Notes: generated by a model not told the origin, from the sequence alone. Numbered from the stretch's first letter, positions 30,790 through 52,791 are shown. The stretch is DNA of 64,000 nucleotides from Lepidodermella squamata (GCA_047495785.1 JBLDXI010000026.1:1240001-1304000), one strand, 5' to 3'. Program-made: numbers and translations.

Positions 30790-32592
30790 ATGATTCCGGA
30801 AAAATCAATCAGATGGCTCAAGAAAAAGCGAGCGAAATTTCTGGCGAAACTAGCGGACTCAGCCGCTGACGACAGAGTTTATTCGTTGATAATTGACGAG
30901 AAAAATCCTTCGAAATTTCTGCTCCTGGCAAATGCGGGTCTCAGCAACGGATTGAGCCAGCTCAAAATTCGTGAAATTCTGAAGTCAGATTCGGCGAAAA
31001 TAACGCTGCCTTTCAATCGGAATTATTCAATCGCAGAGTTTGGCGACGAAAAGTCTGCCATCGACGCTTTTACTCACCTTAGTGATCAGCAAACGAGTAA
31101 TGGGGATATTTTCCCTTTCTTCCTCCGATCTATGGTCAATTTTGACATTGTTAAGGTGGAAATCGACCCTCCCTCTGGATTGAAATTGATGGATAACTTC
31201 CTGAGTGAGGAAGAGGAACTGCTTTTGTTGAAATTTGTCGACGATCTGAAAATCTCGAAACCAATTGATTCTACTTTGAAACAGCGAAAAGCCTGGCATT
31301 TCGGCCATATTTTCGACTATTCAATGAATCAAGTCAAGTTTGCGGAGTCGAATCCGTTACCTGAGTTCTGCGCGCAATTTTTATTCGAAAAATTGTTGAG
31401 AGAGAAATTGGTCACTGAAGAGCCTGATCAACTGACTATAAATGAGTACGACCCGGGTGATGGAATTCCCTATCACGTTGAATCACATTGTTTTGGTGAC
31501 GAAATTGTTTCAATAAGTTTGGGAAGTCCCATAGTTATGGAATTGAGGAAATCTCAGTTGGACGATCGGCGATTGGTCTCCCTCCGTCTTGAAAATCGAT
31601 CTGCCTTGTTGCTATCAGGGGAATCGCGGCAAAATTGGGAACATGGAATTCCGAGCCGGAAAACCGAAGTTGTAGTTGAAAAAGAGGACGGCAGCTATTT
31701 GAACGTATTTGATCTGCCGAAAACAGACCTGGTAATACCCGAAAACGGCTATAACTTCGGCACTTTGATTAGGCAACGTCGAGTCTCGTTCACCTTTCGG
31801 AAAGTTGTTCAAAACCAGCCTGAACCCGAAAAAATTCCGAGCCGAGTAATTCTGCCTGATACTCGTGTTTTGGAGCAGAATTACGTTAAGGAGGTCTACG
31901 AAGCTGTCGCGCCAGATTTTTCATCAACCCGCCACACTCCTTGGCCCAAAGTCGCCGATTTTGTCCGGTCTCTAACAGAGGGTTCGTTACTTGCGGATGT
32001 CGGATGCGGAAACGGGCGGTATTTTGCTGTGAATCGCGACATTTTTACGATTGGTTGTGATTTTTGCGAAAATCTTCTAAAATTGGCCGCGCAGTCTACC
32101 CCAAAATGCGGTGTTTTAGTCAGTAATTGTTGCAATTTACCCTTTCCTGATAATTCTATGGATGCTGTGATATGCATTGCGGTTATTCATCATTTAGCCT
32201 CGGAGGAAAGACGGAAACAAGCGGTTGATGAGCTATTCCGAATTTTGAGACCAAGCGGCCGAGGCTTGATTTCAGTATGGGCGGTTGAGCAGTCTGATGA
32301 GTCGACTGGGTCAGCCTCGAATTATGTCGCCAATCGCAAAAACTACGATGAAAATAACGTGGAAATGGTGAATGTTGATGGGGTAACGTTACCAGTCCAC
32401 AAACCTCGAACACCGTTCAACCCAAACCGTCGCGATTGTTTTGTGCCATGGAAGAAAAATTCGTATCGTTATTACCACGTGTTCAAACGCGGCGAGTTGG
32501 AACAGCTTTTCGATCATTTGAATGGCAAAGTAACGTTTGCTCAAAATTATTTTGACGACGGCAATTGGTGTGTGGAATTTGTTAAATCTTGA
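30790..32592 (+). CDS. ALKBH8: tRNA wobble-uridine methyltransferase/hydroxylase ALKBH8 (RRM + AlkB + Trm9-like MTase), intronless
   Basis: Motifs LLLANAGLSNG (RRM), PDQLTINEYDPGDGIPYH, WEHGIPSRK, RVSFTFRK, FSSTRHTPWPKV, DVGCGNGRY and RYYHVF. Confidence 0.92.
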   Translation: MIPEKSIRWLKKKRAKFLAKLADSAADDRVYSLIIDEKNPSKFLLLANAGLSNGLSQLKIREILKSDSAKITLPFNRNYSIAEFGDEKSAIDAFTHLSDQQTSNGDIFPFFLRSMVNFDIVKVEIDPPSGLKLMDNFLSEEEELLLLKFVDDLKISKPIDSTLKQRKAWHFGHIFDYSMNQVKFAESNPLPEFCAQFLFEKLLREKLVTEEPDQLTINEYDPGDGIPYHVESHCFGDEIVSISLGSPIVMELRKSQLDDRRLVSLRLENRSALLLSGESRQNWEHGIPSRKTEVVVEKEDGSYLNVFDLPKTDLVIPENGYNFGTLIRQRRVSFTFRKVVQNQPEPEKIPSRVILPDTRVLEQNYVKEVYEAVAPDFSSTRHTPWPKVADFVRSLTEGSLLADVGCGNGRYFAVNRDIFTIGCDFCENLLKLAAQSTPKCGVLVSNCCNLPFPDNSMDAVICIAVIHHLASEERRKQAVDELFRILRPSGRGLISVWAVEQSDESTGSASNYVANRKNYDENNVEMVNVDGVTLPVHKPRTPFNPNRRDCFVPWKKNSYRYYHVFKRGELEQLFDHLNGKVTFAQNYFDDGNWCVEFVKS

Positions 32593-32682
32593 CGAAATAT
32601 TTTGCTTTGGGAACTTTAATCACCGTATTTTTTTGAATAGGTTCATTTTTAATGAAATTTGAACTTGGACAAATCAAATCAA

Positions 32683-35600
32683 ATGGCTACTTCTTCAGCT
32701 GAACTCGAAAAGCTCCAGTTGAGAAACGAACTCGACCGCTTGCGGGCGGTCATAAATGAAGGCAGTGCCCAGGAAAATGAAATTATTGGAGATGGACTCG
32801 GAGATACCGTTTTAGAACCGACCTTATTCGACGATCCTAATCCACCTCAAACGACTTCATACGACCTTTTAGTCACTTCGACTATCGCCCCGATGGAACC
32901 GGCTGTCGTTCAAAATTATTTGAGGCAATGTTTGGAGGTCAATCTGCAGTATCAAGAACAAATTCGCCAGAAAATCGATTACATTCGTAAGGCGAAAGAG
33001 AAAATTAAACAAATGATGGCGGAGAAGAAGCAAGAAATCGCGATTTGTGGCGATGAAAGGGACACTTACGAGGTTTTGAGACCCCTCCCAGTAAATGCAA
33101 GACCTTCAGAAATGACGATTAACAGCTTTTCTATGCCGTATTTGAGGCGAGTTCATGGTATCTATGCACCGCCGAATGATGACGTGAAAACTAAGTCGAA
33201 AAATGGCGAAAATATGGCGCATGAAGAGAATTACTCGAGCGGCTGGAAATGGGGTGATGCGAATCTGGAAAATTCTTTGCGGCGCGAAGTAAGACGGGAG
33301 GTTTTATCCCGGTTTCTCGCGCCATACATCCAGGAGCGAGACGATTTGCGCGAAATTATGAAAGAAATCGACGATGTTGAAAAGGCGAGGCGAGATCTTC
33401 AACAGGTTGAAGCGACGATAAAACGCATCATCCACGAAACTGATATCACTGATTTGTTCAAAAACGCCGAGTTGATGGAAAAAGTTGACTGGATGAAAGT
33501 GGCGAAAAATATGAAGAGCCAAGTTACGCATAGGACTTGTCAATTAGTTTGGACGAATTACCTATCGCCGTGCGTGAATAAGCACAAATTCAAACGTGAC
33601 GAGGATCAAGCGCTGAGGAAATTGACGATGAAATCGGTGAAGCGTTGGTCGAAAATTGCGGCGAAATTAGGCACGAATCGAACGGCTTATCAGTGTCTGC
33701 AGCGGTATAACTCAAAAATCAACCCGCGGTCGGAATATCGGAGCTTTTACAAGTTCGAAGGTGACGGGCCTAAGGTACTCTGGCGACGGGTTGACGATGA
33801 GCGGTTGATGGAGCTCGTCTCTGAATTCGATTTGGTTCAACACTCGAATGAAAACACGATTCGGCACATTGATTGGAACCGAGTATCCACGGTGAGTTTG
33901 GCAAATTCTTATGAAGTATAACATATGGCACAGTACTTCGGTTGATAATAGCTTAGGAATATCTGAAAGATTCCTGGAATTTTCATAGCCAGACATAGTG
34001 GTAGATCAAGTTACGTTAGTCGAGCGAATTCGAAACCGACTTGATCGCTGTCAGCTCGCATTTTTCCAGCCGGGGTAGTTAGTTTGATGACGGTTGGGGC
34101 TAGCTTGAGCTTTTATATAGTTCAAAAGCGGAGTTTAGTTATAAAGAAATGATAACCTACCAGGAACTACGGTGTCCATGGCGTCCCTGGTGCTACTTAC
34201 TATGCTAGAAGGAATCAATCTCAGCCAGGCAGACTCCCCTCCTTGAAACGCTTCACAAAAAATGCCATGCTTTATAAGAAATGTTCGAACCAAAGTCCTA
34301 ACTTTGAAATCATTTAAGGTCCAAGAAGACCAATATTGCTAAGAATTAGTATACAGATGCGCTATTTTTTTTGCAATCTGTTAAAAATCGTTTATCCATT
34401 CTCTAGCTTATGGGTGAATTCTCCGCGAACGAGTGCATGAAACGATACATCTATCTGAGCTCAATTGTTGCGAAGGGTCGCTGGAACGACGATGAAGAAG
34501 TGCGCCTGGAAGAAGCCGTTGCAACGTATGGAACTTCCAGCTGGTTCGCAGTGTCAACTTACGTCGCCACGCGCTCGCCATTCCAATGCCGATCTCATTA
34601 CGAAAAAATCATGATTCTAAAAAACGAGACGAAGCTACTCGGAATGCGAGGACCGATTGAATGGTCGCATGAAGAGGATACGATTTTATGGTTCAACCGC
34701 AACTCGTCCGCTGAACATGTTCGTAATTACAACGAAATTAACAAATTATTGCCGAATCGGCTGAAGACTGAATTGAAACAGCGGTTCAATTTGCTGAAAT
34801 TATGGCATAAACACGCTCGTTGGTTGCTGAAAAACGAGGGCACCTTACTATCGTTATTAGTCAAATCAGACACAGATCTCACATTCGCTGAAGTCGAGAA
34901 ATTGAAGAATGAAATGGAGCGACATACAAATTCGCGCCGTAGCAATTCGAGCGATAAATTTGAAGCTGGCGCGATAACTTTCGCTGAAATCGGTCAACTG
35001 GAAAAATTGACTAGTGCCATGATTCTCGAGGCTGGTTTATCCCGCGAATTGGTCGATGATAAGCTGAAATTGATTCGAGATATCGCGAATTATCGCGCAG
35101 TTCCTGTTCCGCTAATGCGAAAACTGCCGTCGAAAGACAAATTTTTCGAGCGGAAGGAAGAAGTCCACCTTAAAATCAAAGAAATGATTTTGCGACTTCA
35201 ATATCTTCGCTGCAAGAAAATTGATGATTTCAACATGAATCGAAAAATCATTACAAAGCGTCATCAGCTGAAGAAAAGATACCCTTCGATTAATATGGCT
35301 ATGGCGAAATTGCATTACGCGATGCGATTTCCTCGTTACATTGACCGGGCTCGTAATTTGCTGCTCGAAATGGAAAAAGTTGATAGCGGAACTCCTGTTG
35401 CAAAATTGATTGAAATTTCGAGAAAAATCGATTTCCTAGCGAGGAAGGTCAGAACTCGTGAGGCTTTGAGGCTCAAACAACCAGCTTCAATGACGACTTG
35501 GAACGATATCGCGACTCGGATTAGGGTCATTTACCGCAAGAAGAGCTTGATCTATCCCTCCCAACCTCGCAAAATGTATGCTGACAAACTATGGCGGCGC

Positions 35601-37193
35601 TTTAAAACGTCTGTACCTCGACCAGACCAAGACAAGATTTCGAAGGGGCTAGCAAAGTAAGTTGGTTTCAACTCAAAATGAGCCTGGCTTAATCTAATAA
35701 AATCCAGGTTGTTGATAACAAATCTCGGCAGTAACATCGAAGGTCTTGCTAAGTATGCGAAAAGTTCATTGGAGCAGGCTGATGCCCAGATTCAACAGAG
35801 CAAAGAAGACCGACCTGCAGAAAACGATTCAGATACCGATTTCGCGAATCATTTGCCTCAAATCAATGCAACCGATGCGATTTTACGTATGAGGCGTTTT
35901 CGGGCAGCCTTATCGCTCGACTGCCTTAATGCTGATGTAGACGGCCCCAGCACTTCATCCGGTTCTTTCGTTTCGTTGAGAAATGAATTTGCTACAATTT
36001 CTGACATTGACGACGACGAATTCGTTTTGAGAGATTTGTCGCCGGTTATACCACCGAACCCGGTTACTACCGTCTCATATCGGAGTCTGCAAATGGCTCG
36101 AATGCGGTTGCAAGATTTGCTGTCTGAAAGTTGTAATTCGTCGGAGAGGCAACATTTAATCGAGACAGTTGCTGCTCTGAAAGAAAAGCCTGACGAAGGC
36201 TATTCATTGCTGCAACGGCGATTTGAAGCCCTATTTACGTGGCCTGCTTTATTGGAAAAAGTCGAGCCTAGATTTGATAACGAACCCGTTCGAATCGCGA
36301 AAACTCCAGTTTTAACTCCGAGCGATGTGCCTGATACAGACGATCCACCCGAATACAAAAGTGATAAACCGCGACCTCGTCTCGTACCGAAATTTCTGCG
36401 GACCAAAGAAGGAAGGGCATTACGGGAGAAGTATCTCCAAAAATACCCATTTGCTCGTAAAGATCGAGCCAAGCTTTACTTCTCATTTCAAAATTGGTTC
36501 AAGGGCGACTTGGAAAGCAAGAGAGCCCCTGCGAGGTTTGATATTCCGACCAATGTTTTCCTGCCTCCCTCTCATCGAGAGCCGAGATCTCAACGCATCA
36601 AAACTCTAATCGAACAGGGACGGATTTCGAGAGAGAGATTAAGTGGGCTTTCAAGACAGGCGATTTTACGTCGATCCATGAAATTTGCGAAATTGAGGCA
36701 AATTGAAATCGAGAGAGAAATTATGGAAGTGTCGAATCATAGTGATTCATCCGATTCTGAAGTTCAGCCGGTTCACTCAAGACGGGATTTCGCTATTGAA
36801 TTGGCCCAAAGAGCTATCTTGAGACACCAATTTGAGGGAACCGAGGTCGATATTACAGTTGGTCGAAATAACTTCACTTCCGAAATTTCGTCAAACAAAC
36901 GAGCTGTCGATAGGAGGCCTGTACAGCAATCGATAAATGTTTCCGACTCGGATAGCTCGGAAAATGAGCAAGAGACGACAGCTCCAGCAAAACAAGTTCG
37001 TTTTGCGCCGAAAGACGAGGTGATTGTTCCTCAAATTCTGCCAGTCCAACCGCCTCAAGTCGCGTTGCTCGAGCTGAATTACGAAGACTTGCTGCGATTG
37101 TTCGAAAACGGTGCTCGAAGCAGTGTTAAAATTGCCATTCCCCTTCCAGCCGCTGCTGCTGCTGCTCATCCACCAAATTCTTCTTCACGATAA
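32683..37193 (+). CDS. SNAPC4: snRNA-activating protein complex subunit 4 (SNAP190), paralog A (exons 32683-33891, 34407-35656, 35708-37193)
   Basis: CLEVNLQYQE coiled coil, FSMPY..PPNDD, and Myb repeats (DWMKVA..WTNYLSPCVNK; WSKIAAKLGTNRTAYQCLQRY; KGRWNDDEE..RSPFQCR). C-terminal PPN and YSLLQRRFEALFTWPALL blocks match SNAPC4. Confidence 0.85.
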
Positions 37194-37395
37194 AATTGTT
37201 TGTGTTTCATCATAATTTTCTCACCCAGTTTTTCATAATAATTGCAATTTGGCATCCGGTTTTTAAATTTGCCCAGTTTTATTGGAGGAAAGAATGTGAA
37301 TTATCTAATAATCGATCTTTTTTATTTTCTAGGTAAATTTTTAATGAGTTATTGATAAGTTTGGCAACCTTCCTGTCTCGATTTTTCCCGATCGA

Positions 37396-40300
37396 ATGGA
37401 ACCTGATGATGAGCAGGAGCAGCTGAAACGGGAACTTGACCAGCTACGACAGTTTATCAATCTCGATGAAGACCTCACGTTTTCATCAGGAATCGGTTCA
37501 TCTCAAAGTTTCTACGAGGATAATAACACCTTCATTCCACCGCCCGAAGAAGATTCTCTAGCATTAAGTTTACCTCAAAGTTCCAAGTTATCGCTGTCTC
37601 GAGTGCCTAGCGAAGTTTACTCGGCTAAAACAACAAGTTCTCACCAAGCGTCGAATAAGCGGAATTTGCGTCGGTGTCTAGATCTCAACCTCGAATACCA
37701 AGCCACGCTATGCAATTATCTCGACGCGCTGCGCCAGACCCGGCGCGATATTCAAGCGCAAATCAAGTTCACTAAATCCGAGATTGAATTTGAGGAAAAT
37801 GAGCGGAAAAAACGCGATAATCGCAGACCGACCCCGGTCATTTTAAGACCAGGCGCTTTGACCCTGGCTTGTTTCCGCCGGCCTTATTTTCGCACCCGTT
37901 TCGGCCTATTACCACCCCCGAACCCGGACTCGATCGAAAAATGCCGTCTCGGACATTTACTACCCTATGACGAAAGTTACGAGAGTAATTGGAGGTGGTA
38001 TGATGGATCTTTGAAAGACCGTCTACTTCGAGAAATTCGGCGCGAGCTGCTAGCAAAAATTCTGCAACCTCACATCGAGACTCGAGACGAATTGCGTCAA
38101 TTAGCTGGTGAGATTGACGGCCCTGCTTTAAAAAATGTCTACCGAGATTTGTATGCCACTGAGAAAACTATTAAAACTATTGCTCAAGAAACGAACGTGG
38201 ATCAACTGTTCACAGATGAAGAAATGATGAAACAGGTCGATTGGATGAAAATTGCCAAGCAATTGGGCGGGTCTTTTTCGCATATTACTTGCCAGCTGGT
38301 TTGGATCAACTACCACTCGCCTCTCGTGAACAAAAAGCCGTTTAAACGTGGGGAAGATGGGAATTTAGCTGCAATTGCGAGTGGGCGGAGTTTCCGAAAC
38401 TGGGCAAAAATTGCCTCGGACTTGAAAACACGTCGCAGTGCTTTCCAGTGTTTGCAGCGCTACCATTCCAAATTAGCCCTGAAAGAGGCGAAAAAGGAAG
38501 AAACAAAGGAAGAAATGGTGGATGTCATCGATCGGCCAACGATTTGGCGACCCGAGGATGAACAGCGACTGCTCAGTGTCGTTTCGGCTTTGGGCGTGAA
38601 AACTGCCGATGCAGTTCGTTACATCGATTGGCGTTTCGTATCTCAGGTTTGTTCAATTTTATAACTCGGATTAGCAAAAAATACGCTCAAATCTATGTTA
38701 AAAATTCCACCTTAAAATTAAAATAGTCAATTTTTTCAATTTTTCTAATAATATTATTTTCTATTACAGCAAGTCGGTCAATACTCACGAACCGAGTGCT
38801 GTGAACGGTATATTCAACTATCCTCGAAACTCAACACTGGCTGTTGGTCGAAAGACGAGCACGAACGGCTCGAGGAAGCTGTTAAAACTTACGGCTCCGG
38901 AAATTGGATTGCTGTATCTACTTTTGTCGGAACACGTTCCCCAAAACAATGCTATTCACACTGGGAAGGCACTGTGCATAGAAATGTTGTGAAAACCATG
39001 CAGGAAAACTGCCCTGCCCCAGACTGGACCGCTGAAGAAGACGCGCTGCTTTGGTTCAATCGAAACAGCCAATTGAGGTCCATGCGGCATTTTTACGAAA
39101 TAAACCGGCTGTTACCTGGCCGGCTGAGGGGCGAATTGATGGAGCGGTATAAACAGCTCAAAGCATGGCAAATGCAGGCGAAATGGTTGCTAAAGAATGA
39201 AGGAACCCTCTTGTCTCTTATTGTAAAATCCGATGCCGAGCTAACCATGGCTGAAGTGCAAAATCTGAGGTCGGAATTGGTGCGTTTCAAAGCGGATCGG
39301 CGGCATAAATTGCTGAGCTTATCGAAGGAAGATGCTGAAGAGTTTGCGACGCTTTCGTTCAACGAACAGGCCCAGCTCGAACAGCTGACAAATGCGATGA
39401 TCCTCGAGGCGAGTATGTCTCGCGATTTGGTCCAGGAGAAATTGCAACTGGTTCGAGATATCGCTGAAATGAGAGCTGTCCCGGTTCCTTTAATCAAAAA
39501 CTTGCCCTCGCGAGAAATTCATCTCAATAAACAAAGCGAGGCAATAGGTAAAATTCGTGAATTGTTGCTCAAAGTCACTGCTGATCGGTACGCGAAACGG
39601 GACCGGCCGGTTAAAGCGCCGAGTTTCAATCAAATAATGGCGCGAATTCGTGATGCGACGCGCGACCCTCAAGCTGCGGAAATGGCCCGCGACATACTGC
39701 AACGCCTCGCTTCCGTCCAGGGTGGTACAAAAGTTCGATATCTCATTAATCTATCACACCAACTGGACGCGTTATCTCAGAAAAGTCGGTTCTATTCGGC
39801 TAACCAGCCGCCTCGATGCGCTACGCCGTCTGAGTGGAATTTCTATGGATCGAGAATCGGGTACTTGGTAGCGCGAAATCCGAAACATCGGCGGAAATTT
39901 TACGAGAAGCCTGCCAATGTTCCACGCGGTGAACGGCGCTACCACGCTGCTGAAAAAGTTTACCCTGTTGCCAAGTAAGTTGATCCACCTTAAGAGAATA
40001 GGAATATTTAGTTTATTGCTGTCTGGGATTTTACTATGATTTTTCTTCCACCAGGTTGTTGATATCGAGTTTGGGCTCTGATCTTGACGCTATTTCTGCC
40101 GAAGTCACTACGCAACAAGAATTCGACCATCGACTCGATCGCGATCATATCAGCGAGGCTGCGAATAACCTCGGCGTTTTTCTACCATCTACAACCACTA
40201 CAATGGAAGGGCGTTTGCGGCGGTTCAACATCGAAGTTGCGAAACAAACAATCGAAGCCGCGACTGATTCATACGAAACTGGCAGCGGGGTTTTCCCATC

Positions 40301-41579
40301 GATTCGCGACGAGTTCTGCTCTTTAGCCGACCCGATTGCCGAGGGCCGAAATTTGCCGTGTTTGCCGCCTAATGTCGCCACCGCAAACGGATACCGACTT
40401 CTGCAATCGATGAAATCGAAATTGGCCGAAATTATCAACGAATCCGGTCGGCATAATGCTGAGGCGCTGGGTACGAAAGTTCGGGAGTTGCGAGCAAAAG
40501 AAGATGCAGGCTATATTTTGCTGAAGAAACGCATGCAGGCACTATTTTCTTGGCCGGGAGTTCTGAGCCAAGCCGAACCCGAACCCTGGTCTATGCCTCA
40601 AGATTTCCCTTTCACCGGCGAAATCGCGCCTGAAACTCCGCGGAAAATTGTCGAAATCTACAAACCTTATCAGCTCGACGATAATGGCGATATGGTCGGC
40701 AACAGGGGCCAAAAATTACCCAGCTATCAAGAATCGTTCTGCAGCTCGGTGATGGGCTCACCAGTTGTTCCTTCGGTCTCTTCCAAGTTAAAAGTTCGAA
40801 AACGTTGCACTGTCGCGGCTTTGATTCACAAAAATCCGATCGAATCGAAATCTCACGAACCGTCTGGCCCTAAAACTGTTTTGAGCCCATCCGAGATGGA
40901 TTCATTGAGATTCATCCGAGAAAATCGGAAAAGAGGTTCGATCGCTCTTCAAATCGCTGACATTGCGATTGAACGGTATAAAGCTGAGGAAGCAAATTCT
41001 TCAATCGTTATTGAGAACGAGGCTGGCCCGAGCGATCCACCTTTAAGTATCGCGAGTAACTCGACTGACGATTTGCCGGTTTTCTCACCGCCCCGCTTGC
41101 CCGTGTATCCAATGCCGCAAATCGAACTGATCAATCCACCTCAAATTGAGATGATTGACGCGAGTGAGAATTCTGAGTTGCCTAGTCCGTTGAAATCAAA
41201 AGCTATCAACAAATTGCCATTCAACCCCCTAACACCGGCCCAGCAGCAACAGCCGCAAAGCGTGTTGAAATCGGATGATATGGAGGAAACTACCAGTGGT
41301 AAGAAAAATGAGCGTGAAGTTGAGAAGACTACGAAGAAAACTGTGAATTTTAATACCAGCCGGGGTGGTGGTCGTCAATCAAGTTTGTGTAAAAAGCGAG
41401 TAGCAAGCATGCGGGCTGGCAGCGATGCTGAATCATCAATCAAAGCGAAACAGCCGAAAACTGGCGAGGTCCAACAAGTCAAGGTGATTCAATTCACCCC
41501 TGCTGATGTTTTGGGTTGTCTTACCGCAAGTCCGAAGAGTTTCACTGCTGCTCTGGTTCGAGAGTCACCTGCTCAATAG
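37396..41579 (+). CDS. SNAPC4: SNAPC4 paralog B (exons 37396-38646, 38770-39974, 40055-41579)
   Basis: Motifs CLDLNLEYQ, FRRPYF..PPPNPD, WINYHSPLVNK, RSAFQCLQRY and YILLKKRMQALFSWPGVL. Both intron positions match paralog A. Confidence 0.85.
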
Positions 41580-41903
41580 GAAATCAAATAGCTAGAAAAA
41601 AACGATGATTTTTTGACTTTTTTACTCTGAATCGCTGGGAAGAAAACAGGAAATTTTATGTTCAATCTATATCATGTTCTCGGCGAGTTCTTCAAGCCTT
41701 ATGTTTTTAACTTCATTTTTTGTGTTGCTGATCATTGTAGTCAAACATTCTGCGCAATTCCGATGATGAGATGAAAGTGATGATACAAAAAATCGTGCCC
41801 TTGTTGGGTCATTTAATAGGCTATTGCAATTCAAGAAAAAAAACGAGTTTTGTCAATATTGTGTTTTTGGGTATATTTAGAGCTTTACAGATATTTCAAC
41901 GAG

Positions 41904-44900
41904 ATGATTCCTGCTAATCACGACTCGGCTGAGCGGTTGCGGGATGAAACTCGAAAGCTGCAAAATGCGTTATTACTAGAAGAAGCGAGTAATGAAGAAA
42001 ATATGTTGGCTGACAATTCGCTGAATATGATAATGGAAGCCGACCCAGTTCCTGATTCCACCTTAATTTCTGTGGAAGACGTGCCGCTCGAACTTGCAGC
42101 CGCTGAAGAAATGCGACGTTGTCTCGATCGAAATCTTGAATATCAAGCTATGTCGAAAAAATATTTAAATTTGGTTAAGCTGGCTAAGGAAAAAATTGCC
42201 GTTGAAATAAAGCAGAAAGAAGAGATTATTCGGTTGGATGTTCTAGACCGCAAACAGCGAAAGCGCGTTGATGCACCGCTTGAAATGAGGTATGACGGAA
42301 ACACGGCCCTGATTAGTTTCAGGCGGCCGTATTTCAAGCGAGTCCACGGTGTTTCTGTGGACCCAAACGAAGATGTTTTGACTAAATTTAAGAATGAAGA
42401 GCCGTTAGCCTCTGAAGAGTTCTACGACAGCATGTGGAATTGGGGCGAGGCTGGTTTGAAGAAGATATTTTTCCGCGAACTTCGCCGCCAGTGCCTAGCC
42501 AAGCTATTGGAGCCGCATTTGAAATACCGCGATGAATTGAAGGAAACCCTGCAGTTTTTGGAAGGCAGTGCGCTGGAAGGGGCACGGAAAGACCTCCGAG
42601 ACCAGGAGAATAAAATCAAAAGAATGGCGAATGAAATGGCGATGAAAGACGATCTGCTGAAGAACAGAGGGCTTATAGAGCGAATCGACTGGATGAAGGT
42701 GGCGAAAAACATCTCTGGTAGAATATTTCGCACGCACATTTCCTTCCAAACTTGCCGGCTGGTGTGGCACAACTTCTACTCACCCACCGTGAACAAATCG
42801 TCGTTCAGCAGAGAAGAAGATCTCAAATTGAGGAAGCTGTTCGAGGAGGAGCCGAATATTGCCATGATTGCTAAAAAGGTATCTTATTGGATTACTAAAA
42901 GAAATGATAATTTATATTTCTCGCAATTCGGAATAACACTGTATTTGGTCGATAACAAGGGTTTTTGCCATAAGATCAATGCGGGTCCTTCGGGTATTAT
43001 CGCCACAATTGTAATGTGGAAGACGCAACTTGAAGAAAAGTGAATCTTTTCAGTCATTCCAATGGTCAATGATCGAATTTTAGGATTAGGTAGGTTAGCG
43101 TTGTCTCCTTTAGGGTGGACTGCCTACCTGGCCGAGACCCAAGTCCAGAGTCTTCCTCGCCTTCAGTTGTCCTCCTCTTTCGAGTTATTATTATTATTAT
43201 TATTTTATTTCGAAAAATATATTCATGAAAAAAAATATGATGGTACAAAATTCGAGGAAACAGAAAGGCACGCAGGCCACTAACTCTGAACCGTATAGCG
43301 GGTAATGTAATGATAGGTATAAAACAGTTCTGAAGAAGGAGAATGTAGTTTTGAAGAGCATGAAGTAGTAAAATTAGTTAGTAAGAGTGCAGTGTTTAGA
43401 AAAATCAAGTTTACGTATTTTTTATTTAAAATATGTCAGATTAGTATCACAATTGTCAGAAGAAGGAAAAATATGAGACGGTAATTCGTTCCAAATGGGA
43501 AGAACGCGATTAAGAAAAAAATTTGCGAAAAGAGGCGAGGTAGCATTGCGATAACGGTCATCAGGTCGACGATATCTAAGACGATGACAATGACCGCGAG
43601 TTTTAGTAGATAAGGGTTCGATGTAAGAAGAAATAGACGAATCAACTGCATTGTAGGAAATTTTGTACAGAAGAGACAGATCTAAAAGAATTCGGCGCTT
43701 TTCTAAAGAGTCTAGTTTGAGGATTAAAAGCCTTTGTTTATAAGATGGGCGGTTAGGATCATGAGAAGAGAAGCCCAAGGCACGACGGGTAAAGTATTTT
43801 TGTACATTTTCAACAAGTTCTTTGTCACATTTTTTGTAAGGCGACCAAATAGAAGGTAGGTATTCAAGCAAAGGCCTAGAATAGACGCGATAAGCCCAGG
43901 CGAGGACGGAAGGTGACTGGCCATGAAAGGCTCTAAGAATAGCATTAACGCAGTTATAGGCTTTGGTAACAATAGTGTTAAGATGAGGGCGAAACGTGAG
44001 ACCGTCGTCGATGATCAGACCGAGGTCCTTGTACGAGTGACAGGTAGGAAGTTGATGAGAACCAAGAGAATATGAAAAATGAAGATTGTTACGGCCCAGA
44101 TGAAGGACACCTTGTAGTTCCCTGTTAAAACATCGTAAGATGTATGTACAGTTTTACACCTGCCCATGCCGTAAGGAAATTAGGGATAGTGTTTGTGATG
44201 CGTTAGTATTTCAACGTTTGACTTTCAATGATACCGCTGAAAGTGCGTTCCCCTCTGCAATGAGACTATTTTCCACTGTGTCGAGGCGAGCATTGAAACG
44301 TTTTTCTACTACTTTGAGGCGATTGTCGATTGCCTCGAACTAATTTTCGGCTCGAATGGAAATTGGTTGCGTTTGGCGACTTGTATATGCAACCTGGTTC
44401 GCCAAATTGTTGACCTGCTTCTTTCGAGATACGCAGTTACCCATTTACTCCATGTAAAACACTTGGAATAGTTTGCTGAGGTTTCGAAAACAAGTGCTTT
44501 TTTATGTGGCGGCTCGTTGGGCATTGGGCTGAGCTCCACTTTTGCCAATTTAGCCGCAATAATAGGTTAGCGATTAGACCAAATTTGACAGTGGAATAAG
44601 TCAATTCCACTTATTGGAATATGTGAACTAGTATATGCAATTGTTGAGTTCAACGAACACAAAGGCGGCCAGCAAAGGTAATTTCGAGTATATTAGAGAA
44701 TTGAACTAATGGCGGATGATTGCTGCGCTGTTTGCACTTGTAAGTGTGGACCAGTTGATCTATGGTGCATGGTGTCAACGCCTATTTTCGTTTCGTTTTA
44801 GAATAGAATGATCTCCAGCTTTTTTGTTTCCTCATAAGCACTTGGGTCATGTAGAATTATTTTCTATGGCGAGTCGACGCATGATTTCTCGGGCGAAGTG

Positions 44901-47900
44901 CATACCACCCTCCGTGTAGATCTTCGTCGTTGATGATATTGCCTTGGTGTACGGCACTTGGAGTAATACTAGTGTCTATTCCTCCAAGGTACGGCAGCCC
45001 GGTCCAACGAGTAACTCTGGCGAGTAAGTGACCGAAAGTAGAAATTAACGGAAGCCATCGCTAATAGTTCATAGAGGAGCAGAGCGTAGGTACCGTTTTT
45101 TAAGGTGGGTAGATTATCCTGATAAGATGTTTCTTTTTTGTAATTTTCAATGTGAACAACAGCGCGAAGAATTTGCGACCATTTTCCTTTTTTAAAGGAA
45201 AAGGAAAATGGTCGCAAATTCTTCGCGCTGTTGTTCACATTGAAGATTATCCTGAGCCTCATAAATTGAAAAATTCGAAGTTCATTAGAAAACCTGTTTT
45301 AGATATGAGAATGTTTCTTTTTGAACTCATTGCTAGAAAATTCGAATGATTTGCAAAACCTCTTATTTCACTTGCTAACGGTTATTTATCGATTTCTAAA
45401 TTTTGAATGTTGTTTTTCTTGGAATGTTGACTCTCGAAATTTTTATTTATTTTAGCTTGGAACTGGCAGAACAGCCTTCCAGTGCTTACAGCGTTATCGA
45501 TCGAGAATAGCGCCGAAAAAGTACGAAATCGACAGCAACGTTATAACGGGACTGGCATGGCATCCCGAAGATGAACGGCGTTTGATGGATGCGGTTGAAT
45601 CTCTGGGCGGCAGCCTGCAAGACCTCTCCAGTGCGGTACGAATCAGCTGGCAAGCTGTTGCCGAGGTACATTTTCATCTTTATTTTTTTTATCTCAAAAT
45701 CTAATTTTTGTATCAATTTATCGTTTATTTTAAATTATTTCTAGATGCTGGGAAATTTCAATTCGACTCAATGCTGTGAGCGATACTTTGAACTGAGCGG
45801 GAAAATCGTGAGGGGTCGCTTTTCGGACGAGGAGAAGAGATTGATCGACGAAGCGGTTGAGATTTACGGCCAAAACTGGATCGAAGTAGCGATGTATGTC
45901 GGAACTCGCTCGCCGAATCAATGTTTCGAATATTTTATCCAAAAATGCCAGCGGCAACTGCTGAACGCGGCTAGTAGGAAGGAGGAGCGTTGGACGGCCG
46001 AGGATGACGCGCTCATTTGGTTCAGTCGTTGCCAGAATTTGCAAAACATGAAGACGATGAGACAAATCCACGCAATGATACCGAATCGCTCGTTCCGCCA
46101 GGTCGTCGGCCGATATGCTAAACTGCGCATCTGGTTCCGACAAGCTCAAGTATTAGTTCGGACCGAAAACGCGTTGCTGGAAATTTTATCCAAACCCGAG
46201 TCGGAATTAACGCTGCCCGAGATTGAAAGGCTGCAAACTGAGTTGAAACGCGTGCATGACGAGAGGCACAAACGAGCGAGACACGAAACGCCGGAGGAGC
46301 GTCATTTGAAAAATTTTGTCGAACAAGGCGAGATTCAAAAATTGGTGACTGAGCTGTTGGTTCAAGCGAGTCTTTCGCGGCAGGCTGCTCGCGAGAAAAT
46401 TCGAATGATACGCGACATAGCGTCGTACCGAGCTACGCCCTTGCCTCTTTTGAGTACAATTGCTAACAGAAGAGCTTGTTTTGATGAGCATATAACTGCG
46501 AGAGAGAAGGTCCTGGAAATGCTGGAAAAGAACAAGAAAAGCTCGAGAAGGGCTGGAGGTGCGCCGGTTGAGCCGATAATAGATGATAATCTCAATGCCG
46601 ACGACTTGTTTGAGGTTGTGAAAGGTTACATCGAAAGAGCAATGCGAGATCCAGACACGGCTGCCCCAGCTCAAAAAGTTCTCGCGGATTTTAACAAAGT
46701 CCGGTCTAAGGCTACCGTGCGGCAGTTGCTGAGAATTTCAAGGAAGCTGGAAGAATTAGCGGCAAATGTCGATTCGGATAGCCAGAACAAGGTTGCGATT
46801 GCGAGTCCGGAGGAGTGGCTTCGATTCCGGATAGCTATTTCGCTATACTACCGGCCAGCGACTGTTTGGAAGTGGAAAAATCGTTGCTTCTATCAGCCGA
46901 TTTATATCGGCCTGACTCGACACCATACCTACCAGATTCGGGTGCCTTTCGAGGCTTTCTTTGAGACTGCCAAGTAAGTTTCTTGTACAGTTCTGAATTG
47001 CATATATAATTACGAGCCAAGTCGCAAAAATATGTGCTTACAGAGTAAATATGTGACCCATAAGTACCCATGGGTCAACCAATGGGGATGGGATGGGGTT
47101 TTCTGTTTTTTTTAACCATTTTAGAGCTAGATGAGGGAGTATGGGTTACATTGAGAGTGATGGATCGTTACGAGTTAGACTCTCAATAGGCCGTTTTCAA
47201 TCGAAAGTAACCTCTCAATATTGAGAGTTAACTATGCCACATGGATAGTAAAAATAATAAAGGGTCGTTGAGAATGCACTTTCCAAGAATGAGCGAATGA
47301 AAGTACCTACCGTAAACACTCGTACTTAAGGTGGGTCTTATATTCGCATACGTTTCCGAAAAAAGAGCATTTTAGTTCAAAAAAACAATTATAAGACTAG
47401 TCTTATATTCGAATCACCCACCTATGATGGTCTACCTAATGATCGAGCCTCCCTTAAGTACGAGTTTTTACGGTATACCCAGACGAACGCCGTTAATATT
47501 TTAGCTCAAAAATTCATATGAGAGATATGAATTTAATACCTAGATGTTTGTTGGTTGTTCCATTTGTCACTCATTTTGATGTGTAAGCCGAAATACTGCA
47601 TATCAACTTGTTAATATGAAAACCATGTTGGATTGATGTTAAATTCACATAAAACTCCTAGTCATATGAAATACCTATGCGATTCATGCCTATGTCCGAA
47701 ATTAATCGTTTTCACAAAAATTCCTGTTCATAGGTATGTGAATAGGAAAATGAGCTATGAGCAATGAGCAAGATTCATCTTAACCGAATTACATGTGAGC
47801 AAAAATCTTGGTCATTAGCTCAAGGCACTTGCGTCAGTCGAGTTTCGACTTTTTCGCTGTCTTCACTTCATGTTCGCTATCCTCCCTGTCACGTTTCAGT

Positions 47901-50900
47901 TTTTGTCGTAACCGATCCAGTCCTTCAAGATCCTTTACGACCAAGCCGATCCCTCGTCGTTCGACAATGTCCACAAAATCCAAGCTAGAGTCGCCTAGAC
48001 TTCGAAAGGCAGCAAAACTAATTTATAGGTGGATGGCTGGTTCCGACCCAAACTGTATGGAGAAACTTGAAGGGGATTTCTTCGAACCTTATGATCAGGA
48101 GCCACACTTGATTCTTGAATGGCGAAATACCGTCAAAAAACCACTGCAGATTTAGAGTAATTTTCGAAACATTTTCAACAACTGTGATGCGATCTGCAGC
48201 AAACTTGATGAATTTTGCCAAGTCGTAAGAGACTCCGTTACCAATTTTCTTGCAGGAACACTTTGCGAGTAGACTACGCTCTTCAGGGTCACGCGAAATT
48301 TTACCGCAGCTGCACGTCGTAAATTGAGTCATAGACTGGCTGTCAACGATTCGGCGAAGAATTCGGCCTTTCGACGCGATAGTATCAGCAAAGAAGTTGC
48401 CGCCAACCAAGCCGTCAATGATCTTCAGTAGGTTCAGTAGGTCGACCACAGCTACCCAGGGCAGCTTGTATCGCCATGCGACGCCCAGAATTAGAACGAA
48501 GACAGAAAGATAGGACATTCTGCAAGCGGCAAATACGGGTTGATCGAGTTGAGACCAGTCAAAGTCGGAGTTGTTTGACTTGGCAGATGCGAAAAATTCT
48601 TCGTAGCCATCGTCCTGTAGAGACTCAGGAAATTGGTCTGATGCATCGAAAAACGGGCTGTCGTCATCATTAACGTGGCGGTTGCGGTGGCACGAGTCTC
48701 AATCGCTTAAACCCTGATATTTTTGAAGCTAGTTTCGATTCCAAGTTCCCTAGCCATGTATAGAGCGTCAATCAGAAAAGCAGGTTTGATCATAACTTTC
48801 AGTGTCATAGCCAAAAAGTTCTTCACGAAACTGAGGCAGAGCTTTTTAGAGCCTTTTCAGGAGATGCTCAAGCCACTTCGCTGGTTTCTACTTGTAGGTG
48901 TCCATAACTGAAAATTGGTCTCATTGCTAGTTTCTTTTTAGTAGTTTTCGGGAGACCACATTGGTGAGCTAGCCCAGATCCTCTTGCTTCTACCGGTCCG
49001 TATAATTAATTCTATGTAGTTCAATATCAATCAATACCATTGCTGATTATACAACTTATTTTCGAGATCATTTATTTGCTGTGAATTTTCAAGATCGAGT
49101 TTCGTAATTAGTTAAGTTGACCAATTCCCATATTTGAAACTGTTAATAGTTGCATTTAATCACATTTTTCACTGTTGATTTAGATTGCTGATCAGCGGCA
49201 TGGGCTCAAATGTCGAAGAACTCAAATCCGAAGTTCAAAAGCAGCTGAGCGACGTCGACCGAGGACGAGCTAACGATTTCATCCAATCCATCGAAGACGA
49301 AGAAATCCAAAAAGTCGCCCGCGAGGTTGGTCTATCTCAGGAACAGCCTCTACCCGAGTCATTCTTGCGCCGTTTTTACGCTATCATGGCTATTCGAGCG
49401 TTGCAGGCTCCGGTCGACAATTCGCATTCCGCTCGTCTTTCTTATCCGAATATTCAGGCGGAATTCGAAGAAACTAGCCACGTGAGACCTGATGAGTTCA
49501 AGGATAAGGAAGTAGCCCCGGTTTTCCCACCCAACCCGGCTACAGCTAATGCCTACCGGATTTTGACCATGTCTCGGCTTCGTTTGCAACAAATTGTCGC
49601 CGAACAATGTTCTAGCGAGGGCGAGAAAGCGAGACTAGCGAAAAAGGCTGAAGACTTGCGGTATAACCCGACTGAGGGCTATTCGCTATTACAACGGCGG
49701 TTCGAAGCCCTATTCACGTGGCCGTCAGTGCTAGCCCGGGCGATGCCGCGAAACCATGAAGAAAAAATCAAATTCCCAAGGACTGAGAAGTTCGCAAATA
49801 TCAGCGACTTTTTGGCGAAAAGCGAATATCTTGTCGATTCCGACAGCTCGGATGGCGAATTTGAGGAGGAACAGCAAGTCGTGGATAGGTCGAAGCAATA
49901 CGTCTTCCCGCCTGTTGATCACGATGAATATTCGGAGGTTTTCGATAAGCTGAGTCGAGAATTTGTGCCCAGTCAAATGACGCGAGATGCGAAATTGAGG
50001 TTCCCTAACACGCGTCGCGGTCATCTGAGAAAAGGCTCCATTCCTAGGGAGCTGTTCCCGAACTACGATACTGTAACCGTCGAGCAGGTGAAGGAGCGAA
50101 CGGAAAAGTTTCGCGAGCAGAAACAGCGTCTCGAAAAGGAACTCGAGAAAGAACGGGCTGAAATGAGGAAAGCGTTGAAGTCGCCCACGACGAAACAGGA
50201 AATTGACCACCAGCTTAATACACTTTTTCCGATTATTATGCTGGATCCATTGCCTGGTTATCCGCCACCCGAGTCAGCGATTCCGACGTTGCGAAAGAAG
50301 AAAAAGCCGGGCCGGCCGCGAAAATTCGAATCGGATGAAAAGGATGAACCTGATCCTTCGGACCCCGATGTCGCTCTAACTGTTACTAAGCGACTGTTTG
50401 AAAAAAGTAGGCAAAAATATGGGCATATTGTGGATCCCGAGCAGGTCGACCAGTCGCCTGATTTCGCGCCTCGCAAGAAATTTCAGAGGTTTTCGAATCG
50501 TAAACACGACTTGGGCCTGACAAAGAGCTTGTTTCGCCCAACTCCAGCTATGCTTGATGGTGTCGACAGGAGAGGATTCGAATATCTTGATAATGCATCA
50601 GCATTCGACTCGTCAGCAAGCGAAAAACCAGTTGACAAATCGAGTCCAAAAGCCCAAAAGTGGATGGAAACCGTAACCACGCCTTCGGTATCGTCGGAAA
50701 ATCTGCTTGAGAACTGTTTGAATAATCCGGACTTGACCGGGCCTGAAATCAGTTTCGACCAGCCAATCCGGTTGAAGCCGGAAGCGGTTTCAGCTCGAAG
50801 GCCAATGAAACCGGTCGAAAACCCGTCAAAACCAGGCAAGCCAAAATCGCCGGTAAAGAAACCCGTGAAAAACTCGAAAAGACCGGAAAAGTTCATGCCA

Positions 50901-51554
50901 TCTTCTTCGTCGGATTCGGACGATTCTGACCAAGCCCCTGTAGCACAACAGGCATCGAGAGCTCGCAAAAAGCAAATTTCGCCATCGGACGAAGCTCCGA
51001 GTCCGAAGAAAGCGAGGCGGAAATCATTTTTCACCCCTTCATCGCCGCCGAATGCTTCGCCAAAACGGCCTCCCAAATCGCCGAGAAAAAATTCCGAAAA
51101 CGATTTAATGGGCAACTCATCCCCCGTAAATCATTCGGATGCGGCCCAGGCTACCCCTTCAATCCAACGGGTAACCAAATCGCCCCGACAGGAAAAATCT
51201 GCCTCCAACAAATTTGTTGGCACTTTCACCCCTGTTCAGTCTATGGAGACTCCATCCACCCAGCGGGTGGGCAGTATTCCGGATTCGAGCCAACCGCCAG
51301 CTGCTACTCCAGTAACTCAGTTTCCAACATCGATAATTCAGGCGAATTCCGACCAGCCGGTTGCAGTGATTCAACTAACTCAAGCTGATTTGCTCAAAAT
51401 TTTTGAAGGCGGCGCGAGTTCGGTCGCTATTGCGATACCGCTATCTCAAGCCGCTACGCCCGGTTCTTTCACTGCAACGCCGCAACTGGTCTTGCCGATT
51501 AATTCGGCTGTTTCAACTAATAGTAGTAACATACCGCCTGAGAAACAAAAATAA
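41904..51554 (+). CDS. SNAPC4: SNAPC4 paralog C (exons 41904-42878, 45456-45665, 45745-46973, 49184-51554)
   Basis: Motifs CLDRNLEYQ, FRRPYFKR and WHNFYSPTVNK. A hidden exon at 45456-45665 encodes LGTGRTAFQCLQRY...WHPEDE. Also RGRFSDEE..RSPNQC and YSLLQRRFEALFTWPSVL. Two long TE-containing introns. Confidence 0.82.
43184..44110 (-). mobile_element. 5'-truncated CR1/L2-group non-LTR retrotransposon in SNAPC4-C intron 1
   Basis: Open frame 44108-43422 reads VLHLG...YKDLGLIIDDGLTFRPH...RPLLEYLPSIWSPY..ENVQKYFTR...LDSLEKRR...FFLNRVLPIWNELP (RT C-terminal region). It is followed by a 3' UTR and a (TAA)n tail at ~43184-43210. Confidence 0.88.
45146..45244. repeat. Perfect inverted repeat with 46-bp arms and a 7-nt loop
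   Basis: 45146-45191 is the exact reverse complement of 45199-45244; the loop is TTAAAGG. Confidence 0.95.
47310..47473. mobile_element. MITE of the Tc1/mariner-pogo superfamily in SNAPC4-C intron 3
   Basis: Terminal inverted repeats CCGTAAACACTCGTACTTAAGG / CCTTAAGTACGAGTTTTTACGG (1 mismatch) are flanked by TA on both sides, with an internal duplicated GTCTTATATTCG. Confidence 0.8.
48018..48518 (-). mobile_element. EnSpm/CACTA-like transposase fragment in SNAPC4-C intron 3
   Basis: AVVDLLNLL, Cys pairs (CSC..CSC) and LNLQWFFDGISPFK..VW..IIRFEEIP...WVG..HP resemble the DG..FK..W....ELP N-terminal catalytic block of animal EnSpm/CMC transposases. The fragment is truncated by a stop. Confidence 0.55.
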
Positions 51555-51805: not shown

Positions 51806-52791
51806 TCAATAAAAGTCGTTATCGTTCGGATTGTAGATGGTTGGCGTTGTTGCTGCTGTGTCGGTACAGATGATCAGAGGTCGCTGGTAATTGTACTCAG
51901 TGATTGTGCGATCGACAATGAGCAAGACCTCCCCAGATCTGAAAAGAAATACACAAAGCCACATTCAATGGACAATATGAGTGTCATTGCTTAGGGTTGA
52001 AAATCGATATTTGAAAAATCGAAAAAATATTTCGCAATGTGAAGACCCTTTCGAAGCCGACTTCCAAAGGCTTTCGGGGCGCACCAATGGGTTTTATGGC
52101 CTGTTGAAAATCGAATTTTCGAGAAATTTCAATGAACCAGAGTTTCAAATTGATCAAAATTGCTACAAAAATGCAGTTTTTCGAACTGGCCCTCGCGCAT
52201 TCGCCCCAGTCGTCTCACATTGGACTATCAAAATGTCACGTTTAACCTAGGAGGACCGCAGATTGGAGTTACCTCTGCAACCTGAGCTCATAATTATATA
52301 CCTTGACTCCATCACATCAACTACGGCGCAGGAAATTCCGCAGACTAGAAGCAGAGAGAAGCCAAGGGCGGTCCACAGCCATCGACACATGAGCAGAGGA
52401 ATAAGCGCCAGCATGCCGTATAACGCTCCTTTGTGCCACCTGGGTCTATCAGCGAAAAATTGATTGATTCCATTCAGACACTCCCAATTGACTGGAGCTT
52501 CTAGTCCCATTATCACAGTTGCGAGTATTATCAGTAAAACGCCGGAGGAGAAACATAGCGAAGACAGGGTAAACATTGTGAAAAATCCGCAAATAATAGC
52601 TGCGCAACAGACAATGACTACGCCACCTGGGCAAAAATATTAGTAATTGTGAGAAATTGTTTTCGAAAAATACTTTTCACGATAACCCGAATTCGGCTAG
52701 ATTTGGTTTGGAAATTTGGTCGACTGAGCTCATCGATGACCAAATAATTACTGGATCCGTAAGGCGAAACCGAATGACTTAAGGTCATCAT
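51806..52791 (-). CDS. Divergent Flower/CACFD1 paralog (approximate exons 52791-52674, 52626-52302, 51938-51806)
   Basis: GVVIVCC...GLEAP...DRPRWHKGALYG.LALIPL.MC is colinear with the neighbouring Flower gene. The middle exon is solid; the first and last exons are inferred from splice sites and phase. Confidence 0.65.

Follow-up and report, generated by a model that had tools for sequence, protein, structure and literature searches.

The window analysed here, a 64,000-nt stretch of Lepidodermella squamata DNA (GCA_047495785.1 JBLDXI010000026.1:1240001-1304000), carries three tandem genes for SNAPC4 (SNAP190), the Myb-repeat scaffold of the transcription complex SNAPc. We read the cluster as an old, lineage-specific tandem expansion of three working genes retained through sub-functionalisation, and give this reading a probability of roughly 0.6. 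SNAPC4 is a single-copy gene in humans. Small-RNA genes depend on SNAPc to bring in both RNA polymerase II (Pol II) and RNA polymerase III (Pol III), and animals with trans-splicing also need it for their spliced-leader RNA genes. No description of SNAPC4 paralog sets was found in the literature searched; the SNAPc paralog specialisation described is that of C. elegans SNAPC1.

Gene structure, identity and transcription of the SNAPC4 cluster

The gene models rest on open reading frames (ORFs) and splice sites; together with the Myb domains, the features of the cluster are as follows.

32683-37193, plus strand: SNAPC4 paralog A, 1314 aa; exons 32683-33891, 34407-35656 and 35708-37193
37396-41579, plus strand: SNAPC4 paralog B, 1326 aa; exons 37396-38646, 38770-39974 and 40055-41579
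41904-51554, plus strand: SNAPC4 paralog C, 1594 aa; exons 41904-42878, 45456-45665, 45745-46973 and 49184-51554
33484-34811, plus strand: Myb domain of A
38236-39174, plus strand: Myb domain of B
42684-46140, plus strand: Myb domain of C, interrupted by introns

An initial annotation had placed three full-length tandem SNAPC4 genes in 32683-51554, and these ends proved to be the ATG of A and the stop codon of C. The frames stay open for 1314, 1326 and 1594 codons without an in-frame stop, including one exon of 789 codons in C, and GT..AG borders are found at every intron. Two intron positions are common to A, B and C, the first in phase 0 within Myb repeat Rb and the second in phase 2 at ..AK/LLI.., ahead of the last exon (494-789 aa across the three copies). 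The claim of conserved intron positions stands for these two, but C has an additional 2577-nt intron in repeat Ra. Likewise, repeats Rh, Ra, Rb, Rc and Rd of all three copies align with the SNAPC4 proteins of Limulus, Haliotis, a frog and a bird, so that all the Myb repeats are kept as first described, except that Rd is atypical in every copy and received no Pfam call in any. Pfam called Myb repeats in exons 1 and 2; the ORF scanned for B began downstream of Rc, which therefore lay outside the input. A tblastn search found no further SNAPC4-like pieces in the window. That the cluster comprises three functional SNAPC4 genes is very probable.

Database searches were run exon by exon with single exons as queries. 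In PDB searches with phmmer, human SNAPC4 was the top match of exon 1 of A (2.4e-20, residues 13-344 on 27-356 of chain 7xur_A), exon 2 of A (8e-15), exon 1 of B (3.5e-21, B residues 4-373 aligned) and exon 1a of C (1e-10, C residues 56-312 aligned). For the first exon of each copy (exon 1a in C) the alignment takes in the non-Myb N-terminus, and here c-Myb and CDC5L trailed SNAPC4 by 6 to 16 orders of magnitude. Readings of the genes as c-Myb, CDC5L or DMTF-type factors were rejected, as the non-Myb N-terminus fits SNAPC4. The exception to SNAPC4 as best match was exon 2 of C, which alone matched only generic Myb/SANT proteins in PDB. The last exon of A gave no PDB match in a single-sequence phmmer search, the human chain included.

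An exhaustive HMMER search of 1.84 billion representatives was made with a profile built from the five exon 1 sequences. The first matches (about 1e-165) were the two proteins of a close relative, called L1 and L2 below, after which the score fell to 1e-44. The first match beyond this drop (P0003), whose protein name was not looked up, was made via the Myb repeats only. The name snRNA-activating protein complex subunit 4 was carried by eight of the ten outside matches looked up, which came from horseshoe crab (Limulus), scallop (Argopecten), abalone (Haliotis), fishes, frog and bird; the other two were a spider (Trichonephila) protein labelled MYB3R-4 and a nameless ENA protein. At the level of clusters, nine of the ten include this name. 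With the PDB top matches and the nearest outside relatives annotated as SNAPC4, the proposed SNAPC4 descent of A, B and C was borne out. The scallop cluster has two entries on the same chromosome, one flagged as low quality, and could be a duplication or an annotation artefact.

Twelve residues, C83, L84, N87, L88, Q91, F149, P152, Y153, G159, N165, D167 and K171, are invariant in A, B, C, L1 and L2, and correspond to human residues 82-109 and 144-179, the latter being region I. The N-terminal CL..N..YQ motif and the region I stretch F..PYF+...G....PN.D...K are kept in all five of these in-group genes. Region I of human SNAPC4 is the part that docks on SNAPC3 (PMC9652321). A C-terminal block, PPNxxT ... 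EGYSLLQRRFEALFTWP, recurs as a repeat family in the three window genes.

36051-36245, plus strand: C-terminal block of A
40365-40556, plus strand: C-terminal block of B
49527-49724, plus strand: C-terminal block of C

The EGYSLLQRRFEALFTWP block of C is identical to that of A. Of the stored proteins, 28 have the core R[FLM]..[LIVM][FY].WP close to the C-terminus, and the SNAPC4 profile search had yielded almost all of these. In each of the three copies the N-terminus, the Myb array and the C-terminal block are therefore SNAPC4-like. Like human SNAPC4 (PDB 7XUR, 7ZWC and 9FSO), they have the N-terminal motif, region I, a coiled coil and 4.5 Myb repeats in the order Rh-Ra-Rb-Rc-Rd. They differ from human SNAPC4 in being three, in the atypical Rd and in that the positions of human Y389 and R445 are not conserved.

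Complementary DNA (cDNA) and genomic contigs were compared over one 6-kb stretch, 36900-42900. Run X2 is cDNA-derived, as indicated by SMART adaptor ends and GT..AG joints, and diverges by about 2% from the window. Its contigs touch A, B and C. They cover the 3' end of A (36960-37138) and exon 1a of C, and both introns of B (38647-38769 and 39975-40054) are spliced in them. Two X2 contigs leave the window sequence at 42878 and continue into CTTGGAACTGGCAGAACA, an 18-mer unique in the window that lies at 45456. As this is the start of exon 1b of C, the 2577-nt intron is really spliced. The cluster was compared with the layout of a trans-spliced operon: the spacers are 91, 203 and 325 nt, with all genes on the same strand. 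The cDNA contigs span the A-B spacer and the B-C spacer up to 41838, and a C contig begins at 41903, one base ahead of the ATG. T-rich AG sites lie upstream of each of the three ATG codons; neither spliced-leader junctions nor a leader sequence were seen at these sites or in the cDNA contigs of 36900-42900.

The listed differences in B comprise 34 synonymous and 6 nonsynonymous changes, 32 of the 40 being at third codon positions. Even with the poorly conserved last exon counted in, the ratio of nonsynonymous to synonymous polymorphism (pN/pS) comes to about 0.05 (p = 1e-16), and B is under strong purifying selection. Constraint on A and C may be argued from their long open frames, kept beyond silent-site saturation. 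In genomic run X1 a second haplotype of B, which agrees with X2, is present at about half depth at 38319-38373 and 40559-40895; it differs by clusters of third-position changes and by a 3-nt deletion at 40855 that keeps the frame. As X1 carries this second haplotype, the sequenced sample is heterozygous or mixed at B.

Age and order of the duplications

The databases contain a single close relative, a metagenome organism represented by contig L001 (ENA ERZ27332993, 16.5 kb) and the nearly identical L002. A word-index protein search, first with A exon 1 and then with the five-sequence exon 1 alignment, returned only the two proteins of this relative, and a scan of JGI metagenome contigs gave no additional one. 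L001 carries, in order, an ALKBH8-like gene, L1 (three exons), a 214-aa ORF, L2 and a minus-strand membrane-protein ORF. The SNAPC4 slot is thus flanked alike in the window and in L001, by an ALKBH8-like gene on one side and a CG6151-P gene on the other, the CG6151-P side of L001 being judged by eye. The flanks in the window are as follows.

30790-32592, plus strand: upstream flank, ALKBH8-like gene (2OG-Fe(II) oxygenase plus methyltransferase, by Pfam), a 600-aa single ORF, intronless
52247-52576, minus strand: downstream flank, exon of a CG6151-P family membrane protein (Pfam PF10233, 2.9e-08)

The end of the ALKBH8-like gene is 91 nt from copy A; in the relative, too, an ALKBH8-like gene precedes SNAPC4, at a distance of 78 nt. 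The L001 membrane ORF (15460-15900, minus strand), which follows the SNAPC4 copies, was CG6151-P-like by eye.

Alignments of the copies were built segment by segment, and the concatenated columns were used for trees and codon counts. The extensive divergence first noted among the copies was confirmed and amounts to 25-49% pairwise identity by segment, with minima in the N-terminus, the Myb flanks and the middle of the last exon. At 4-fold degenerate sites identity was 0.23-0.35, compared with about 0.26 expected from composition; A-C (0.35) and B-L2 (0.33) were slightly over chance. The ratio of nonsynonymous to synonymous substitution rates (dN/dS) of the copies, which the initial annotation had put forward as a check, was calculated but is undefined, as synonymous sites are saturated. 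Since this saturation leaves the synonymous rate (dS) undefined, the duplications must be very old.

In a tree with 24 outgroup matches from the profile search, for 8 of which the SNAPC4 annotation had been checked, the in-group genes fell into a single clade of five with 100/100 support and a long stem; hence, the expansion is specific to the lineage. The longest branch was that of C (1.10-1.34). The in-group tree from all alignable segments separated {B, L2} from {A, C, L1} with 90/97 support, and the relations among A, C and L1 varied with the exon used. Forcing the window copies together made the tree 11.5 log-likelihood units worse, with a p-value of 0.083 in the approximately unbiased (AU) test. 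Given the 90/97 split and this p-value, a first duplication before the species split is favoured, not proven. The copies are ordered A, B, C in the window, with B between the two copies of the other line, and L1 then L2 in the relative. The first duplication would have given the lines {A, C, L1} and {B, L2}, most likely before the split from the relative, and A and C would then have separated later in the window lineage, or else a third copy would have been lost in the relative.

Over 38 aa, the 214-aa ORF between L1 and L2 (L001 10931-11575) matches the central part of the L1 last exon (45%, E 1.5e-5). A partial duplication or a third copy since lost may have left this ORF behind; as the match is weak, it was not counted as a third SNAPC4 copy. 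L2 (L001 13074-15074) has lost the phase-2 intron, its last two exons being fused (..LAK LMISKLGAN.. is continuous), and its last-exon region is about 264 aa, compared with 494-789 aa in the window copies. L001 and L002 have nine differences in 11.7 kb.

Divergence of the copies and their possible division of labour

In the human complex the major groove is occupied by Rb, Rc and Rd, whereas Rh and Ra have a role in assembly; Y389 and R445 are the only SNAPC4 residues that read bases (PMC9652321). Copy C has diverged most in Rc, Rd and after the Myb domain, and its assembly repeats are kept. Between A and C identity is 55% in Rh, 54% in Ra and 45% in region I (A-B: 60%, 48% and 32%), and falls to 38% in Rc, 25% in Rd and 33% in the post-Myb region (A-B: 56%, 53% and 53%). 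In C the second Trp of Ra is replaced (NIAMIA), and the RxFA(I/L)..A..AI.R motif common to A, B and L1 is missing. A long region after Rd, from ..WLLKNEGTLLSL.. to ..RDIA.YRAVPVPL.., is conserved in all five in-group genes; when the stored SNAPC4 hits were searched with patterns from two short pieces of this region, the matches were all loose and lay elsewhere, at unrelated C-terminal positions. The alignment gave the following equivalents of residues in the human DNA-binding repeats.

Human Y389 (Rb): A K, B E, C E, L1 E, L2 E
Human R445 (Rc): A K, B G, C Q, L1 G, L2 T
Human H369 (Rb): A H, B Y, C R, L1 L, L2 R

By these three positions A looks the most canonical copy.

Each copy retains the CL..N..YQ motif, the region I stretch, Rh and Ra, Rb, Rc and Rd, and the C-terminal block. 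Given these retained assembly and DNA-binding parts, each can most likely seed a SNAPc-type complex, which it would form with SNAPC1 and SNAPC3. Retention would most likely have come about by sub-functionalisation, with the copies divided by promoter class or by tissue or stage; sex or partner proteins may also set the division. We judge functional specialisation of some kind to be slightly favoured. Specialisation by target promoter class in particular is doubtful. Three distinct SNAPc complexes, one per SNAPC4 scaffold and each with its own preference for a proximal sequence element (PSE), would be a rather unlikely outcome. A possible split of three such complexes is between Pol II snRNA genes, Pol III U6-type genes and spliced-leader RNA genes.

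Several points weigh against this interpretation. Separate complexes, targets and expression domains are predictions from the sequence. The base-reading positions vary in single-copy orthologs too, being N in Limulus and Haliotis and K in frog and bird. In human SNAPc the specificity comes in large part from SNAPC3, and single alanine changes at the base-reading residues cost only 2-4 fold in affinity (PMC9652321). Given only two SNAPC4 base-readers, the contribution of SNAPC3 and such modest effects, the differences at the Y389 and R445 positions may matter little; they are a hint of altered DNA reading, not evidence of it. The AU test does not reject a history in which all duplications followed the species split (p 0.083). 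Recent purifying selection is evident for B only, and the five L001/L002 differences inside the SNAPC4 copies are all nonsynonymous and too few to interpret. The cDNA evidence consists of about the last 180 nt for A and of the first exon and one junction for C, and the contigs give no expression levels.

The copies could instead be redundant or dosage copies, all three proteins entering one common SNAPc with one set of PSE targets, and the array would then be kept only for expression level or robustness. All copies have the same domain set and assembly motifs, and in the human complex much of the PSE specificity comes from SNAPC3 (PMC9652321), as redundancy would have it. However, the copies are only 25-49% identical by segment with silent sites saturated, and C has diverged mainly in the DNA-reading repeats. 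From the usual fate of duplicate genes, copies that are fully redundant should not all have stayed intact over such a time, which counts against redundancy. As three copies have been kept beyond silent-site saturation, simple redundancy is unlikely, and we consider this explanation improbable.

A somewhat similar standing is given to the idea that one copy, C being the best candidate, has left snRNA transcription for another Myb-factor role, with or without SNAPc partners. The long branch of C, the loss of SNAPC4 as best PDB match of its exon 2, the replaced Ra Trp and the missing RxFA(I/L)..A..AI.R motif all fit such an exit. C has nevertheless kept the N-terminal motif, region I, Rh and Ra, and its EGYSLLQRRFEALFTWP block is the same as that of A, and we regard the exit as quite improbable. 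That C or another copy is a decaying gene, with long transposon-filled introns as the first sign, is very improbable: C is the fastest-evolving copy and has two introns of 2.2-2.6 kb with transposon fragments, but its 1594-codon frame is open, the 789-codon exon included, its extra intron is precisely spliced in cDNA and its conserved motifs are kept.

Sub-functionalisation of three working SNAPC4 genes, the reading we prefer, can be compared with known systems. In C. elegans SNPC-1.1, SNPC-1.2 and SNPC-1.3 form mutually exclusive complexes with one shared SNPC-4, and these complexes serve snRNA, female Piwi-interacting RNA (piRNA) and male piRNA transcription (bioRxiv 10.64898/2026.08.31.747621; PMC7884074). 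A core subunit of SNAPc is duplicated in both cases, but the nematode subunit is SNAPC1 and the Myb scaffold is shared, whereas in the window the scaffold itself is multiplied. The nematode piRNA analogy drawn in the initial annotation found no support in the sequence. In Drosophila a single complex, DmSNAPc, adopts different conformations on slightly different PSEA elements for Pol II and Pol III. There, too, one PSE-binding factor must serve promoter classes with different polymerases, but the fly solution is conformational, whereas three scaffolds would be a solution by gene duplication, if so used. Among TBP-related factors and tissue-specific TAF paralogs, duplicated core promoter-recognition subunits have been found by experiment to take promoter or tissue subsets. 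Those belong to different protein families, and specialisation there is proven by experiment.

If three complexes do exist, promoter-class choice would be encoded in scaffold paralogs and not in PSE-induced conformations, as in the fly, or in SNAPC1 paralogs, as in C. elegans. With its three deeply diverged DNA-binding scaffolds, the lineage offers a natural experiment that could show where in SNAPc the choice of promoter is made. If the copies are equivalent, the cluster is a well-documented old gene family expansion and nothing more.

Introns, transposon remnants and smaller features

The two long introns of C both contain transposon debris. The intron in Ra is found neither in A and B nor in either copy of the relative, and the last intron has much shorter homologs, of 51 nt in A and of 80 nt in B. 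The features of these introns are listed below.

42879-45455, plus strand: C-specific intron, phase 0 within Ra (IAKK/LGTGRT), 2577 nt, with its junction in cDNA contigs
43422-43972, minus strand: antisense ORFs in the Ra intron, by eye the C-terminus of a reverse transcriptase of the long interspersed nuclear element (LINE) type (retrotransposon tail)
45141-45249: inverted repeat in the Ra intron, 51-nt arms, 98% complementary (one mismatch), 7-nt loop
46974-49183, plus strand: last intron of C, 2210 nt
47308-47475: inverted-repeat pair in the last intron, 24 nt, 96% complementary, 120 nt apart, like a miniature inverted-repeat transposable element (MITE)
48018-48518, minus strand: ORF in the last intron, 166 aa, with a weak DUF7695 match (3.4e-05) under the Pfam cut-off

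The antisense ORFs of 43422-43972 had no match in Pfam, and their element type is thus suggested by motif appearance only. At 45141-45249 the same peptide is read by ORFs of both strands, and this inverted repeat could be a foldback or MITE-like element. The ORF at 48018-48518 resembles, by eye, a fragment of a DNA-transposase gene.

The first intron of A (33892-34406) is 515 nt, compared with 123 nt for the homologous intron of B, and ARAGORN found no tRNA in it. Scans for tRNAs and with Rfam likewise gave no match in the window or the cluster; with no snRNA or spliced-leader gene in the window by Rfam, it offers no SNAPc target whose promoter could be compared. Two further features lie close to or within the genes.

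32617-32655, plus strand: 39-nt element upstream of the A ATG, a repeat family that recurs before B at 37309-37347 with 72% identity
41299-41359, plus strand: optional intron in the last exon of B, 61 nt, GT..AG; joint 41297>41359 (cut +1) in one X2 cDNA contig

As it contains a T-run followed by AG, the 39-nt element is a candidate acceptor or regulatory site. Splicing of the 61-nt intron of B shifts the frame to ..TS AGVVVVNQVCVKSE*, with an early stop and loss of the conserved C-terminal motif. Because flanking contigs end exactly at the joint, both the spliced and the unspliced forms seem to be present.

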